From positions 248,001-312,000 of IMG/VR virus record IMGVR_UViG_3300030102_006934: DNA of 64,000 nucleotides; one strand, written 5' to 3'. This document shows, piece by piece, positions 57,116 to 64,000 of the stretch. The first letter of the stretch is position 1. Each line of letters opens with the position of its first letter. The notes under the pieces were generated by a model, which was not told the origin of the DNA, made no database searches, and worked only from the letters and a program-made list of their open reading frames with translations. Made by a program: the position numbers and the translations under genes.

Positions 57116-58048
57116 ATGAATCCACATTATCAAGTCTTAGGTTTAAATTCTAACGCCACTGAAGAAGATATAAAAAAAGCTTATAGAAAATTAAGTAAAA
57201 AATATCACCCAGATTTAAACCCAGAAAACCCAAATGCTGAAGACATGTTTAAGAAGGTTTCAGAGGCCTATACTCACTTAACCGATACTAAAAAACATAC
57301 ATATAACAATAATGATTTTTTTAGTAGTTTTCAAAGAAGAAGAAAACCAAAGGCTAGAACAATACTATATAATCTAGAAATAACATTAGAAGAGGCATTT
57401 TTCGGTACTGAAAAACAATTAGAAATTGTTAGGGATGTTGTTTGTGATAGCTGTAAAGGAGATGGTGGTATAGATAAAGTTAGTTGTAATCAATGTAATG
57501 GTCAGGGAATATTAAAGGGTGATAATACTTTTTATATGTGTAATAATTGTATGGGTAAAGGATTTTTATTCATGAAAAAATGTGGTACTTGTCACATGTC
57601 TGGTTATAAAACAGAAAAAAAAATAATTACCATAAATATAAACCCCAGTATATTAAATAACATGAATATAACTAAATTTGGTGTTGGTAGTGAGGTTAAA
57701 GATGGATTGACTGGGGACGTTTTAATTTCAACATCCATAAAAAAACACAAACACTTTACCCTAGAAGGTTACGATTTAAAGATGAAAAAACCATTATCAG
57801 TATTAGATGTTATTTTAGGTGGTGAGTTTAATGTAAAAACGATAGATGGTGAGGTTAAAATAAAGATACCACAATTCTCAGATATTAATAATTACTTTAG
57901 GGTTAAAAATAAAGGTATGAGAAAAGAAAACAACAAAAGAGGTGATTTATACGTCAAGATAGAACCCAAGTACCCTAAAAAAATAAACCCTCAAGAAATG
58001 GCTCTAATAAATGCCTTAAAAAACTCACCCAACTTTAAACTAGACTAG
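57116..58048 (+). CDS. dnaJ: DnaJ (type I) co-chaperone
   Basis: J-domain [12 protein letters not shown], four CxxCxGxG-type repeats, C-terminal GDL/GDV and TIDG motifs. Confidence 0.92.
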
Positions 58049-59333: not shown

Positions 59334-59756
59334 ATGAGCAAAATTGAAAACGGAAAAACTGTTAAAGTACATTATACTGGTAAATTCGATGACCAAAATG
59401 TATTTGACTCTTCTCTAGAGAGAGAACCATTAGAAGTAACTTTGGGTAAAGGTCAGTTAATACCTGGGTTCGAAAAAGGGTTAGTTGGGTTATCTGAAGG
59501 TGATAAGAAAACTATTGAAATACAAGCTTCTGAAGCTTACGGTGAATTAAGAGAAGACTTAATTCAAGAAGTAGGCATAACTCAACTACCAGAAAATGTA
59601 CAGGTAGGTGACAGATTACAAGCACAAGCTGAAAACGGAAACCCAATCCCAGTAGTAGTTACTGAAATCAATGGGAGTAAGGCAAAAGTAGATGCTAATC
59701 ATCCATTAGCTGGTAAAAATTTAATTTTCGATGTCGAGGTACTTGAGGTAGTTTAA
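59334..59756 (+). CDS. FKBP-type peptidyl-prolyl isomerase (SlyD/FkpB-like, no His tail)
   Basis: VKVHYTG..VFDSS..PLEVTLG.GQLIPGFE..L, AYGE, VDANHPLAGKNL.FDVEV. Confidence 0.92.
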   Translation: MSKIENGKTVKVHYTGKFDDQNVFDSSLEREPLEVTLGKGQLIPGFEKGLVGLSEGDKKTIEIQASEAYGELREDLIQEVGITQLPENVQVGDRLQAQAENGNPIPVVVTEINGSKAKVDANHPLAGKNLIFDVEVLEVV

Positions 59757-60253: not shown

Positions 60254-60465
60254 TGATAGGTTTAATATTTATAGTAGGTTGTCTTATATCTTCATTGTAT
60301 GTAACATTTTTTTTATTTGAAAATCGTGTAGATGAAAAAAATGGGAACAATATTAAAATAGACGATGCTATGGATTATGATGGCCATGGTAATTGGGGTA
60401 GATTTCCACCTAAAAAGATTAAGATTAAAGAGGGTGGTGTAAAAAAAATAAATAAAAACTATTGA
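60250..60465 (+). CDS. Small single-TM protein
   Basis: LIFIVGCLISSLYVTFFLF..DYDGHGNWGRF. Confidence 0.6.
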   Translation: MMIGLIFIVGCLISSLYVTFFLFENRVDEKNGNNIKIDDAMDYDGHGNWGRFPPKKIKIKEGGVKKINKNY

Positions 60466-60492
60466 CTAATTAAAAAACATTACTTATATTTG
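60462..60492 (+). promoter_or_regulatory. Promoter TTGACT-17-TATATTTG driving the DUF2828 unit
   Basis: Exact 17-nt spacing; -7 element ends 22 nt upstream of ATG 60515. Confidence 0.7.
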
Positions 60493-60514
60493 TATAATTA
60501 AAAATTTGGAAACT

Positions 60515-61933
60515 ATGTCAAAATTAATGGAAGCTTTACAAAGAGAGAACACAACTACTACTAATGGTATGACCACAAGTTCATCATCATTAAATAATTG
60601 TGTTAACTTGTTTTTCTCCATCGGAGCGATGAGAGGGAAGAACAAAAATAGGGTAATTTCTATTTTTTCCAAAGCTTTCAATGAAGATGCTAGAACTGCG
60701 ATGAGAATTTTATTCTGGTCTAGAGATGTTAGGTTTGGAGCAGGTGAAAGACAAATCTTTAGAGATGTGTTATCTTACCTAGTAGAGAACCATACTGAAG
60801 TGGTTAAAGCTAATCTTGACTTAATTCCAGAGTACGGAAGATGGGATGATGTTCATGGACTAATCGGAACCGATTTAGAAAATGAAGCTATCTCACTTCT
60901 TGTATATGGTTTAAAAGAAGCTAACGGTTTAACAGCTAAATGGATGCCTCGTAAAGGTTTAGTATTTAATAAAGTACGAAAACATTTAAAAGTCACCCCA
61001 AAAGAGTTGAGAAAACTAATAGTTTCACTATCAAACACAGTTGAACAAAAAATGTGTTCAGGTAAGTGGGGAGAAATCGAATACCATAAATCACCATCAT
61101 TAGCTATGTCTAGATATAGTAAAGCTTTTGGTAGGAATGATTATGATAGATTCACTGAATTTATACAAAATCTAAAAAAGGGTAAAACCACAGTTAACGC
61201 TGGAGCTTTATACCCTTATGATATAACTAAAAATGTGTCTTATGGGGACGCTGATTTAGCTAGTGAACAATGGAAAGCTTTACCTAATTGGATGGAGGGT
61301 TCAGATGAACTAATCCTACCTATGGTTGATGTTTCTGGTTCTATGGGTTGTTCCGCAGGTAACAATAAAAATTTATCTTGTATGGACGTAGCTGTATCAT
61401 TAGGTTTATATATTTCAGAAAGAAACGAGGGAGCTTTTAAGGATATGTTTATGACATTTTCTTCAACACCCAAAGTTCAAACTTTATTGGGTTCATTGAA
61501 AGATAGAATGTTACAATTAAGTAGAGCTGAGTGGGGGTTCAGTACCAACATCGAAGCTGCTTTTCAAACCATCTTAGACCAAGCTGTTAAATTTAATATA
61601 CCACAAAATGAAATGCCAACCAAGGTATTAATTTTATCGGATATGGAATTTGATTCAGCGGTTAAAGGTAAAGAAATTAACCCTAGTGTTATGACTATGA
61701 TTGATGAAATGTATACCGAAGCTGGTTATACCAGACCTGGTATTATATTTTGGAATATTAATAGTCATGGGGATAACTTCCCAGCTAAGTTTGATGAAAT
61801 GGGTACCGCTTTAATTAGTGGTTTTAGCCCAAGTATAATGAAGTCAGTGATTTCAAATCCTAATAGTTTAACACCTATTAATATTATGAATGAAACTGTT
61901 AATTCAGAAAGATACGAATCGGTAACGATTTAA
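60515..61933 (+). CDS. DUF2828-family Ro60/TROVE-like protein with C-terminal vWA domain
   Basis: TTNGM, LFWSRDVRFGAGER..F, IPEYGRWDD, AKWMPR, VNAGALYPYD, vWA MIDAS VDVSGSM, ILSDMEFD, IIFWN, SGFSP. Confidence 0.82.
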   Translation: MSKLMEALQRENTTTTNGMTTSSSSLNNCVNLFFSIGAMRGKNKNRVISIFSKAFNEDARTAMRILFWSRDVRFGAGERQIFRDVLSYLVENHTEVVKANLDLIPEYGRWDDVHGLIGTDLENEAISLLVYGLKEANGLTAKWMPRKGLVFNKVRKHLKVTPKELRKLIVSLSNTVEQKMCSGKWGEIEYHKSPSLAMSRYSKAFGRNDYDRFTEFIQNLKKGKTTVNAGALYPYDITKNVSYGDADLASEQWKALPNWMEGSDELILPMVDVSGSMGCSAGNNKNLSCMDVAVSLGLYISERNEGAFKDMFMTFSSTPKVQTLLGSLKDRMLQLSRAEWGFSTNIEAAFQTILDQAVKFNIPQNEMPTKVLILSDMEFDSAVKGKEINPSVMTMIDEMYTEAGYTRPGIIFWNINSHGDNFPAKFDEMGTALISGFSPSIMKSVISNPNSLTPINIMNETVNSERYESVTI

Positions 61934-61945
61934 GTTCTTTGACAT

Positions 61946-62086
61946 AAAGTATTGTGGTATTAAGGAATAATTGCAGCAATTATCTTTAAACGATCAAATA
62001 GAGAAAAGGCTTTGATAACCTTAAAGGTGGTGATTTATGTCACTACCATATAAAAGAGTCAAACGATTCTGTTACCACAAAACTTT
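61946..62086 (+). ncRNA. Candidate structured ncRNA module 1 (DUF2828-associated)
   Basis: Ends pair: AAAGT/ACTTT, TTGTGGTA/TACCACAA, GGAAT/ATTCT. Internal hairpins AAGG/CCTT and GGTGGTGAT/GTCACTACC. Confidence 0.6.
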
Positions 62087-62088
62087 TA

Positions 62089-62352
62089 GATATAAAACGA
62101 ATGGATTCTGCAACCTATAACTTCAAAAATAGAAACGTAGAATAGAGGTTTTATCCCACCTTTACCCAAAATTTATAAAGGGGGTGACCATAGGTAAGTT
62201 TAAACGTAGGACAATCCTACACTTGAGGTCGTAAAACATACCTCTTGGATTTGTCTCAAGTAAAATAAAGACATTCAGTGGGGCTGAATTAAAAATCTAC
62301 CGTATCTACAGTGGTTACGTGAAAAATAAAAACTGAACACCATTCCGATATC
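62089..62352 (+). ncRNA. Candidate structured ncRNA module 2 (DUF2828-associated)
   Basis: Ends pair: GATAT/ATATC, GAATGG/CCATTC. Internal helices ACCTAT/ATAGGT, CCTTTA/TAAAGG, GTAGGA/TCCTAC, ACTTGAG/CTCAAGT, ATTCAG/CTGAAT, CGTA/TACG. Confidence 0.6.
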
Positions 62353-62360
62353 AAAAAACT

Positions 62361-62392
62361 AGGGGGGGAAATTATTTTCCCCCTTTTTTTTT
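62361..62392 (+). terminator. Rho-independent terminator closing the DUF2828 + ncRNA unit
   Basis: AGGGGGGGAA-ATTATT-TTCCCCC followed by a long T run. Confidence 0.88.
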
Positions 62393-62447
62393 ATAAAGCT
62401 TTTTTTATTTTTAAAAAATAACTATAATTATTTAAAATGTTATAACA

Positions 62448-63230
62448 ATGAAATATTTTTTCGACATAAAAGAGATAGATAAAAATTTAGCAATAGATTT
62501 TATACAAGAAAGACACTACTCTAAAGTACTACCTAGATTGACTAAACACTGGTTGGGTTGTTTTTACGATGGTGAACTAGTGGGTGTTTTAACTTTAGGT
62601 TGGGGTACACAGCCTTTACAGACAATAAAAAAATTATTCCCTAAGTTGGTATCACAAGATTATTATGAAATCGGTAAAATGTGTATGGATGATAAAATGC
62701 CTAGGAACTCAGAGTCTCAAATGATATCTTCAGTTGTCAGATGGATTAAAATTAATCTACCAGAAAAAAAATTTTTATACACATGGGCTGATGGTATTGT
62801 AGGTAAAGTGGGTTACGTTTATCAAGCTTCAAATTTCATATATGGTGGTTTTATATGGACAGATATCTATATATCTCCGAAAGGTGAAAAAATACACCCT
62901 AGAAGTTCTAAGTCACTACTAAAAGAAAATGCTGATTTTTTGGGTAAAGATAAGTTATTTTGGATGACCCCAGATTTTATGAAAACAAAGGGTATTAGAA
63001 GGATAAGGGGTAAACAATTTAGGTATATTATACCCCTAAGTAAAAGTTCTAAAAAAATATTAAAAAATGGGTCCACTGTCACTTGGGGTATAGAATACCC
63101 TAAAGCTAAAGATCTATTATGGAAAGAACAAGTTGCTAAAGGTAAATATGATACACTAAAAGAGATACCACAAATGAATTTAAGTGTTGTAGAGATTAAT
63201 GAAAAAAATGTGAACGCACATAAGAATTAA
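62448..63230 (+). CDS. Mom-like GNAT-fold DNA modification protein (paralog 1)
   Basis: FIQERHYS, GELVGVLTLG, YEIGKMCM..PRNSESQMIS, YTWADG..G.VYQASNFIYGG. Confidence 0.75.
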   Translation: MKYFFDIKEIDKNLAIDFIQERHYSKVLPRLTKHWLGCFYDGELVGVLTLGWGTQPLQTIKKLFPKLVSQDYYEIGKMCMDDKMPRNSESQMISSVVRWIKINLPEKKFLYTWADGIVGKVGYVYQASNFIYGGFIWTDIYISPKGEKIHPRSSKSLLKENADFLGKDKLFWMTPDFMKTKGIRRIRGKQFRYIIPLSKSSKKILKNGSTVTWGIEYPKAKDLLWKEQVAKGKYDTLKEIPQMNLSVVEINEKNVNAHKN

Positions 63231-63444: not shown

Positions 63445-63504
63445 TTATTTTTTATTTAAATTAATTTTATTATATTTGTGTTATTAAATGTAAAACACAA
63501 AAAA

Positions 63505-64000
63505 ATGAAATACGATTTAATACAAAAATTTATCAACAGAGAGGTCAAAGCTAAAAGTATTTTTACCATCAAAAAGATAAATAAGAGTGAAGCTTATGAC
63601 TTTATTAAAAAGTATCATTATTTAGGTGACGCAAAATTTTTCTCTAAATTTGCGTATGGTTTATTTAGTAGAGAGGATGATGGTCTTATTGGGGTCACCA
63701 CTTTTTCTAACCCACAAGGAGCCACAACTATGAAAGGTTGGTTTAACCTAACTAACCAAGATCAATCTGTTTTGGAACTAAGTAGATTGTGTGTTATACC
63801 AGAACTAAATGGGACTAACGCCACATCTTTCTTATTGGGTAATAGTATTAAGATGTTGAAGAAAGAAGGTATAAGATCAGTAATAACTTTAGCTGATAAT
63901 TCTAGACATAGTGGCAGTATCTACCAAGTTTGTAACTTCACTTATTTTGGTTTATCTAATAAAAAGAGTGATTTTTTCTTATACAAAGGTGATGGTACCT
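63505..64000 (+). CDS. Mom-like GNAT-fold DNA modification protein (paralog 2), 3'-truncated
   Basis: Open frame from ATG 63505 to the window end: FIKKYHYLG, LIGVTTFSNP, VLELSRLCV..N..SFLLG, VITLADNSRHSGSIYQVCNFTYFG; TATATTTG at 63471. Confidence 0.8.
   Translation, partial: MKYDLIQKFINREVKAKSIFTIKKINKSEAYDFIKKYHYLGDAKFFSKFAYGLFSREDDGLIGVTTFSNPQGATTMKGWFNLTNQDQSVLELSRLCVIPELNGTNATSFLLGNSIKMLKKEGIRSVITLADNSRHSGSIYQVCNFTYFGLSNKKSDFFLYKGDGT

Follow-up and report, generated by a model that had tools for sequence, protein, structure and literature searches.

The closest described systems pair a Ro60 gene with small non-coding RNAs encoded beside it. The Y RNAs YrlA and YrlB, which bear the motif GNCGAAN0-1G, adjoin Ro60 genes in 22 phages and over 250 bacteria (PMC4201824), and the Ro60 protein of Thermus phage phiLo has been found to bind two adjacent Yrl RNAs together with the host PNPase (PMC12135203). 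In phage Bas63, gp130 has been described as Ro60-like and counters the Ppl defence, and its authors guessed that some of the neighbouring transfer RNAs (tRNAs) are Y RNAs (10.1101/2024.10.10.617714). In the Listeria P100-like phage CKA15, the Rsr-like protein CKA15_055 is present in virions, and unannotated regions up to 2 kb upstream of the Rsr-like gene yield the most abundant phage transcripts, which the authors suggest may be Y RNAs (PMC12282133). What is already known is the protein's likeness to Ro60; its partner RNAs have been guessed at and not identified. Here, we examine two structured RNA modules that lie 3′ of a DUF2828 gene in a 64,000-nucleotide (nt) stretch of DNA, bases 248001-312000 of IMG/VR record IMGVR_UViG_3300030102_006934 (hereafter the window); the record is a 380-kb marine jumbo phage of 31% G+C.

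Both modules are probably expanded, derived versions of an RNA family of common design: a stem of 7-8 base pairs (bp), free in sequence but covarying and with G-C as its second pair, is followed by 2-3 nt, the hexamer CNGCAA, an insert, the 3′ arm and a G. Neither Rfam 15 nor the searchable literature, in which a search for 'DUF2828' returned no relevant paper, contains this family, its motif or its occurrence within tRNA operons. With a probability of roughly 60%, we read the modules as Y-RNA-like non-coding RNA partners of a divergent phage Ro60, for which stem, CNGCAA and G would form the docking site. Binding to the DUF2828 protein is suggested by genomic association, by the predicted Ro60 fold of the neighbouring gene product and by analogy with Y RNAs. 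We favour a docking site because the RNA family tracks one protein family, both in neighbourhood and at genome level, and joins a small invariant feature to a free body, which is the pattern of Ro60 and its Y RNAs.

Two modules with a common core

The preliminary description of this stretch had reported an identically spaced motif in the two modules, and its strings are present where it placed them: AAGGAAT-AATTG-CAGCAA at 61962-61979 with ATTCTG at 62066-62071 in module 1, and AACGAAT-GGATT-CTGCAA at 62096-62113 with ATTCCG at 62342-62347 in module 2. The pattern GAATN5CNGCAA matches twice in the window, both times in these modules, against an expectation of 0.15, and two or more matches occurred in 0 of 100 dinucleotide shuffles. 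Across the whole 380-kb genome it matches five times on the plus strand and never on the minus strand. One of the three copies outside the window lies directly 3′ of a second DUF2828 paralogue (75494-76942 of the genome, 58% identity), where AAAGAAUGCAUUCAGCAA, 105 nt and GCAUUCUG precede a terminator in the same geometry, here as a single module. The same genome also holds an orphan tandem pair of minimal modules (84645-84771), which lies with a terminator behind it in an intergenic gap of 360 nt; it adjoins neither a DUF2828 gene nor tRNAs, and its first unit has CAGCCA instead of CAGCAA.

An IMG/VR search with the protein returned 80 loci at 43-77% identity, 71 of them distinct, and the non-coding stretch 3′ of the gene could be aligned in relatives with 55-77% protein identity. 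There, the two modules are conserved separately downstream of the orthologous gene, keeping their core strings and changing their interiors, in agreement with the earlier proposal of a conserved core within changing flanks and interiors. Since modules 1 and 2 are alike in the core only and each has its own orthologues, the view that they do not stem from a recent duplication also stands. Module 1 is kept in 13 relatives, with GGUAUU-RRGGAAUAAYUGCAGCAAA on the 5′ side and CAAACGAUUCYG-UUACCAC on the 3′ side, and its interior is swapped between lineages; ten sequences have G-C as the pair preceding GAAU, two have G-U and two A-U, and RNAalifold recovers the outer stem and core helix with compensatory changes. 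In module 2, A-N-GAAUGGUUNCNGCAA and CCAUUCYG are kept together with an outer stem that covaries and a long interior that is conserved. RNAalifold on 14 sequences of this module gives 53 pairs, 26 of them with compensatory changes, and recovers the outer stem, the core helix and the interior hairpins. The outer stem, GAUAU/AUAUC in the window, is GGUGU/ACACC in most relatives and AAUGU/ACAUU in L027. The distance between the core halves is 79 nt in module 1 and 221 nt in module 2 of the window; by comparison, the whole of module 2 measures 60 nt in the relatives L036-L038, where the stem GAGUGG/CCACUC replaces GAAUGG/CCAUUC.

This replacement, which turns GAAU/AUUC into GAGU/ACUC, is the kind of compensatory change that backs the pairing claimed in the preliminary description. 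As a conserved element, GAAT/ATTC has to be given up: the stem varies freely and these letters are this phage's version only. The hexamer had been called unpaired, a claim that holds for the RNAalifold consensus folds of both modules and for the 54 minimal family members described below, where its pairing probability is low (0.15-0.43), and that is ambiguous in single-sequence folds of long modules. A pseudoknot between the CAG of the hexamer and a 3′ CUG was dropped because the middle positions do not covary (module 2 sets U against C, and modules with CCGCAA set C against U).

Two additions to the modules were seen among the relatives. An extra conserved element of 45 nt with a GAUAC-UCG-GUAUC hairpin lies between stop codon and module 1 in several of them (L004:4420-4470 and the equivalent place in L002, L010-L012, L015, L016 and L047); the window is without it. 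Most relatives also have an added covarying hairpin in the A-rich 5′ internal loop of module 2, which produces a three-way junction (alignment columns 24-59, e.g. L003:4607-4637) and is absent from the window, L015 and L027.

The RNA family beside DUF2828 genes and in tRNA arrays

Scanning with a descriptor (a stem of 7 bp or more, 2-5 nt, CNGCA[AC], insert, 3′ arm, G) brought up tandem hairpins of the same design in loci too diverged for BLAST; each locus has 1 to 6 of them, on the strand of the gene and immediately 5′ or 3′ of it. Over the family as a whole, one to nine tandem hairpin RNAs adjoin the gene or lie within tRNA arrays, and the insert ranges from 20 to 250 nt, being about 30 nt in minimal members. 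We aligned 54 minimal modules (50-70 nt, from different loci) without gaps over their first 18 columns. Nearly fixed beyond what the scan demands are a C-paired G at stem position 2 (51/54), U at stem position 5 (53/54), U two positions before the hexamer (49/54) and A at hexamer position 2 (49/54); the distance from CNGCAA to the stem and the G after the 3′ arm are also fixed or nearly so. All 8 stem pairs vary on both sides in a compensatory manner. As these seeds were picked for pairing, non-circular tests carry more weight than stem covariation.

One such test takes all CNGCAA sites irrespective of context. A stem of at least 7 bp and a 3′ G accompany 94 of the 183 sites near DUF2828 genes (on the gene's strand and within 700 nt), compared with 54 of 653 elsewhere (Fisher 3e-35) and 17 of 183 once the downstream sequence is shuffled, so that the refuting condition named in the preliminary description, a motif no commoner near such genes than in shuffled sequence, did not come about. 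A blind count of 6-mers in the flanks put TACAGC (6.3x), ACAGCA (4.7x) and CAGCAA (4.2x) at or near the top. The covariance model R1, built from the 54 minimal seeds, gave 81 matches at E ≤ 1 in 554 kb, every one on the gene's strand and 0 on the other; nearly all fall within a few hundred bases of the gene, and non-seed loci are included. By scan, motif or model, at least one module is present in 65 of the 71 distinct loci, and 3 of the remaining 6 end right after the gene.

The reverse search led to the same association. In IMG/VR, 83 exact matches to the 14-base 5′ half-pattern were found, and the 27 that form full modules include 4 that have a DUF2828 gene on their own strand no more than 410 nt away, and 16 in tRNA arrays, always on the tRNA strand; for the 56 matches that form no module the corresponding counts are 0 near a DUF2828 gene and 3 near tRNAs. 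When eight records with tRNA-array modules were searched for the protein, G001, G003 and G004 proved to encode a DUF2828 protein elsewhere, G005 gave a weak match to the vWA region only, and no DUF2828 protein was found in the other four, which are 3-25% complete. In the complete, 362-kb record G004, the DUF2828 gene (85924-88275) matches as two pieces about 940 bases apart, a split that points to an inserted intron, intein or homing endonuclease.

At least 710 sequenced phages have a gene for a Ro60-like DUF2828 protein, among them Felix O1-like, P100/A511-like, KVP40-like, Campylobacter, Staphylococcus and Enterococcus phages and many jumbo phages. In named phages of Firmicutes, Actinobacteria, Campylobacter and enterobacteria, the gene is accompanied by 2-4 modules. 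R1 places three upstream in Listeria LP-124 and cka18, two upstream in Campylobacter CP81, beneath an annotated open reading frame (ORF), and three downstream in Staphylococcus S-CoN_Ph6, beneath tiny ORFs; further R1 matches adjoin the gene in Enterococcus TJE1, Bacillus Thrax1, mycobacteriophage Archie and Felixounavirus HK3. KVP40 (three modules), Serratia BF (eight or nine) and Bas63 carry theirs in the gaps of tRNA arrays, on the tRNA strand, and some tRNA-array modules stop 1-3 nt before a tRNA. Genome-wide, R1 matches in named phages lie beside the gene or in tRNA arrays, the sole exception being a weak match in HK3 (E 0.05). In Bas63, bas63_0130 (gp130) is a DUF2828 homologue by BLAST, and its three modules occupy gaps of the tRNA cluster after gene 130.

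Three features of these loci deserve mention in their own right. At L075:2302-2971, modules alternate with tRNAs at gaps of 2-18 nt (module, tRNA, ..., module, tRNA, module), which implies that the RNAs are probably released by tRNA processing. Predicted modules overlap short 'hypothetical protein' ORFs (L086:1789-1926, L089:3429-3776, L101:3030-3304), such as ORF140 of Campylobacter CP81, CDS0028/0029 of S-CoN_Ph6 and 0137 of Bas63, the last on the opposite strand and with 0138 in the same unannotated gap; these ORFs are probably not genes. In Listeria cka18 (L099:1416-1950), a strong TTGACA/TATAGT promoter is followed by about 500 nt of non-coding sequence, between tRNA-Pro and tRNA-Met, that falls outside the module family, has no Rfam name and is probably the 'most highly transcribed region' reported for CKA15. 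We had considered that the abundant CKA15 transcripts are the modules, and dropped the idea: if the cka18 coordinates apply, the top region is this different 500-nt stretch.

The Ro60-like protein and the transcribed unit

Pfam assigns the product of the gene 5′ of the modules to DUF2828 and DUF7788, with a sub-threshold VWA_2 match (listed at E ≤ 0.01), and it belongs to PHROG 850, 'RNA-binding protein'. An AlphaFold2 model from a 38-sequence alignment (predicted local distance difference test score, pLDDT, 85.6) shows the architecture of Ro60, a ring of HEAT-like helical repeats closed by a C-terminal vWA domain, and its full-length structural matches in Foldseek are Ro60 only (Thermus phage phiLo, Xenopus, human and Deinococcus; E 1e-8 to 4e-5 with TM up to 0.65, those at E 1e-8 to 1e-6 having TM 0.53-0.65; 12-15% identity). 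The MIDAS motif (DxSxS) is formed by D275, S277 and S279, invariant in 38 homologues. The Pfam TROVE profile did not match at E ≤ 0.01, the likeness lying at the level of the fold. The gene product is thus predicted to be a divergent Ro60-like protein with the full-length ring and vWA fold.

Gene and modules are transcribed together. In four independent marine metatranscriptomes, contigs cover 60490-62339, that is, the gene and both modules, starting at 60490-60529 and ending at 62339. Neither flank is covered in the 700 and 1000 bases included, with essentially nothing upstream, and a 4.4-kb control, the DUF2828 paralogue locus of the same genome, has no cover in the four metatranscriptomes. 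Because this control is silent in the same runs, carried-over DNA is unlikely to be the source of the cover. Two of the runs show the module 2 region at 4-6 times the gene's depth, which, crude as contig depths are, is compatible with a stable processed RNA.

Both modules sit inside a 514-base gap between the 475-codon gene and a Mom-family gene on the same strand, and the coordinates of the unit are collected in the table below. The ORF as listed begins at a TTG (60506); the true start codon is probably the ATG at 60516 (MSKLM...). A sigma-70 promoter immediately 5′ of module 1 was dropped, as the TTGACA at 61939 has no usably spaced -10. The terminator stands at the same position in every relative, with a sequence that differs among them.

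Features of the RNA unit in the window, and the paralogous locus of the same genome (last row)
Feature	Position	Strand	Description	Basis
Candidate promoter of the unit, sigma-70-like	60462-60498	+	TTGACT, 17 nt, TATATT, overlapping extended -10 TGTATAAT	consensus scan and sequence
Ro60-like RNA-binding protein gene (predicted)	60506-61933	+	DUF2828 and DUF7788/vWA, PHROG 850	Pfam, PHROGs, AlphaFold2 model, Foldseek
RNA module 1	61952-62080	+	outer stem 61952-61959 with 62073-62080	single-sequence fold z = -6.0; RNAalifold; 13 relatives
Module 1 core, 5′ side	61964-61979	+	arm GGAAU 61964-61968, spacer AAUUG, CAGCAA 61974-61979	aligns to family consensus
Module 1 core, 3′ side	62066-62071	+	arm AUUCU 62066-62070, then conserved unpaired G62071	
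RNA module 2	62089-62352	+	outer stem GAUAU 62089-62093 with AUAUC 62348-62352; several conserved interior hairpins	RNAalifold
Module 2 core, 5′ side	62098-62113	+	C62098, arm GAAUGG 62099-62104, spacer AUU, CUGCAA 62108-62113	
Module 2 core, 3′ side	62340-62347	+	arm CCAUUC 62340-62345, C62346 (C-C mismatch or bulge), conserved G62347	
Intrinsic terminator	62361-62395	+	11-bp G+C-rich stem (62361-62385), then T run	
Second DUF2828 paralogue with its own module and terminator	L083:1501-3200 (genome G000 75494-77150)			

Further 3′, two Mom-family (DNA-modification) genes follow in succession (62448-63230 and 63478-63999), the second cut by the end of the window. On the 5′ side of the Ro60-like gene lie genes for DnaJ (57116-58048) and an FKBP-type prolyl isomerase (59334-59756), with a 402-codon gene without Pfam or PHROG match between them.

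Candidate roles and comparison with known systems

We infer the processing and function of the RNAs as follows. Transcription would start at the promoter 5′ of the gene, run through both modules and end at the terminator. A short helix would close each module and hold a single-stranded CNGCAA at a fixed distance past its 5′ strand and a G past its 3′ strand, and helix, hexamer and G together may form a common docking site for the protein ring. The interior of the helix would then be a freely evolving cargo or effector domain, and the outer stems in this phage's modules would likewise be free to vary. In other phages the same RNAs would be made from tRNA operons, probably freed by the processing of neighbouring tRNAs. 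The resulting ribonucleoprotein (RNP) would most likely act in RNA metabolism during infection, with quality control of tRNA and other RNA, their repair, or the recruitment or blocking of a nuclease as candidate tasks, and this would agree with the counter-defence reported for the Bas63 orthologue. It is tempting, if speculative and rather doubtful at this stage, to extend this to a virosphere-wide class of Ro60-like RNPs. Its universal docking unit might be a hairpin (stem, CAGCAA, 3′ G) about 62 nt long, made from tRNA operons or from the transcript of the Ro60-like gene, with scaffolds of 130-270 nt and conserved cargo domains in jumbo phages; the whole might serve counter-defence, as Bas63 gp130 suggests with its effect on Ppl, by recruiting or blocking nucleases that act on tRNA or on nucleic acid of the phage, or as a decoy for them.

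Several observations weigh against RNA partners of Y-RNA type. The YrlA (RF02553) and Y_RNA models match no module, YrlA having been scanned over the window and over 61850-62450 at E ≤ 10, and over the whole genome the YrlA model gave weak matches only (about 11 bits), among tRNA genes. The motif GNCGAAN0-1G is not matched either: module 1 has AAGGAAUA and module 2 has AACGAAUG, the latter being CGAAUG without the leading G and arising from its particular stem, while stems elsewhere in the family read AGGAU, AGAAU, GGAAU, AGGUU and others. No tRNA-like domain with T and D arms was found in the modules, as ARAGORN leaves the window without a tRNA prediction and no module matches the tRNA model of Rfam. 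More generally, Rfam gave no match in the whole window at gathering scores, terminator-driven noise only in 61850-62450 at E ≤ 10, and tRNA and transfer-messenger RNA only in 15 module-bearing loci (Rfam 15). In single-sequence folds of long modules of the window type, the pairing of the hexamer spans 0.1-0.9, so that its single-strandedness is ambiguous there. The excess depth over module 2 could in part be cross-mapping of the conserved RNA of relatives. The RNAs of KVP40 and Serratia BF lie 7 kb and 200 kb from the gene, for which reason neighbourhood to the gene is not universal. Several fragmentary contigs carry modules without a DUF2828 gene, which we regard as uninformative rather than contrary. 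Finally, R1 gives no match at E ≤ 1 on the window's own modules, whose helices have 5 and 6 pairs plus mismatches and whose inserts are long; their membership of the family therefore rests on motif geometry and orthologues. They do agree with the family consensus in register, in the G-C pair, in the U ahead of the hexamer, in CNGCAA and in the G, and their membership is supported by the paralogue's module and by the minimal module 2 of L036-L038.

The same data can be read in other ways. In the one that competes most seriously, which we hold unlikely and yet worth keeping in view, stem, CNGCAA and G are a maturation or stability element, or a self-contained fold, and the RNAs act without the DUF2828 protein. 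They might for example contain a site at which a host or phage ribonuclease excises them from tRNA or mRNA precursors, or be a host-nuclease decoy, the link with DUF2828 reflecting a shared pathway. That many modules sit in tRNA arrays and abut tRNAs within 1-3 nt would suit such a role, as would the distance of modules from the gene in some phages and the orphan tandem pair of this genome, 8 kb from the nearest neighbour of either paralogue. However, a pure processing signal is not expected to follow one protein family in neighbourhood and at genome level, nor to persist without a nearby tRNA, as it does in the window, and Ro60 proteins are known binders of such adjacent RNA. The interleaving with tRNAs also speaks for acceptor-stem mimics (minihelices) directed at tRNA enzymes or anticodon-nuclease defences, in which the conserved U and A after the stem would stand for U8 and A9 and an A of the hexamer for A14. 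A stem of 7-8 bp that starts G-C, then U and A, and an invariant A five positions on agree with this, and YrlA Y RNAs do mimic tRNA (PMC4201824). Nevertheless, CAGC is without a D-arm partner, no T-arm, CCA or discriminator pattern accompanies it, ARAGORN and the Rfam tRNA model are blank in the modules, and the would-be discriminator must be paired because it covaries with the nucleotide preceding the stem. With the D-arm partner absent and the discriminator paired, we dropped the assignment of the motif to acceptor stem, U8, A9, D-stem and A14, and we consider tRNA mimicry improbable, less likely than a maturation element.

Also less likely than a maturation element, and marginally more improbable than tRNA mimicry, is a cis-acting trailer or leader of the mRNA through which DUF2828 would regulate itself or its message be stabilised. 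Co-transcription with the gene in the window and the position of modules immediately 5′ or 3′ of the gene in most loci are what such an element would show, but occurrence on one side of the gene or the other, arrays reaching 6-9 units, copies in distant tRNA operons and orphans are not, and the many conserved covarying hairpins of the 264-nt module 2 go beyond autoregulatory need. Chance or recent tandem duplication, for which the small size of the shared strings is the only argument, can be set aside. The shuffles, the CNGCAA context test and the 6-mer count exclude chance, and against duplication stand the restriction of the similarity to the core and the separate orthologues down to 55% protein identity.

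Taking the modules as RNA partners of the Ro60-like protein, as we prefer, the motif provides a concrete, searchable definition of candidate partner RNAs, with exact coordinates in genetically tractable phages, such as the three modules after gene 130 of Bas63. Which RNA a phage Ro60 binds, and whether counter-defence needs it, now becomes directly testable. Furthermore, the family accounts for short ORFs annotated as 'hypothetical protein' and for gaps without annotation in the tRNA clusters of phages, and it would give Rfam 15 an RNA family that it does not contain.

Among known systems, the YrlA and Yrl RNAs with Ro60 (Rsr) are closest, as described for Salmonella YrlA/YrlB, mycobacteriophage YrlA and phiLo Yrl1/Yrl2 (PMC4201824; PMC12135203). 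In both cases non-coding RNAs, often two or more per locus, lie on the same strand beside a gene for the Ro60 fold, which in the window is part of a transcribed unit, and in both the 5′ and 3′ ends form a closing, terminal stem with a short conserved motif on its 5′ strand, enclosing a variable effector domain; some members of both are produced together with tRNAs or tRNA-like elements. In contrast to YrlA, the protein here belongs to the DUF2828/DUF7788 clade, without a Pfam TROVE match and with 12-15% identity to solved Ro60s, the motif is stem-N2-3-CNGCAA with a 3′ G rather than GNCGAAN0-1G, no tRNA-like D/T domain is detectable, and many copies sit in true tRNA arrays. Metazoan Y RNAs (RF00019) share with the modules, as we read them, a terminal helix for the ring protein, a variable loop for other partners and several paralogous RNAs per genome, but differ in sequence and model and have a bulged helix GGUCCGA that is absent here; the modules, moreover, are of phage origin and about 62 nt at their smallest. 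The arrays of type III toxin-antitoxin systems (ToxI) are likewise tandem small RNA units beside the gene of a presumed binding protein. However, in ToxI nearly identical units follow one another as direct repeats, and the toxin, an endoribonuclease, cuts them, whereas the stems described here differ and covary, their interiors are unrelated, and the neighbouring protein is predicted to be a Ro60-fold ring with a vWA domain.
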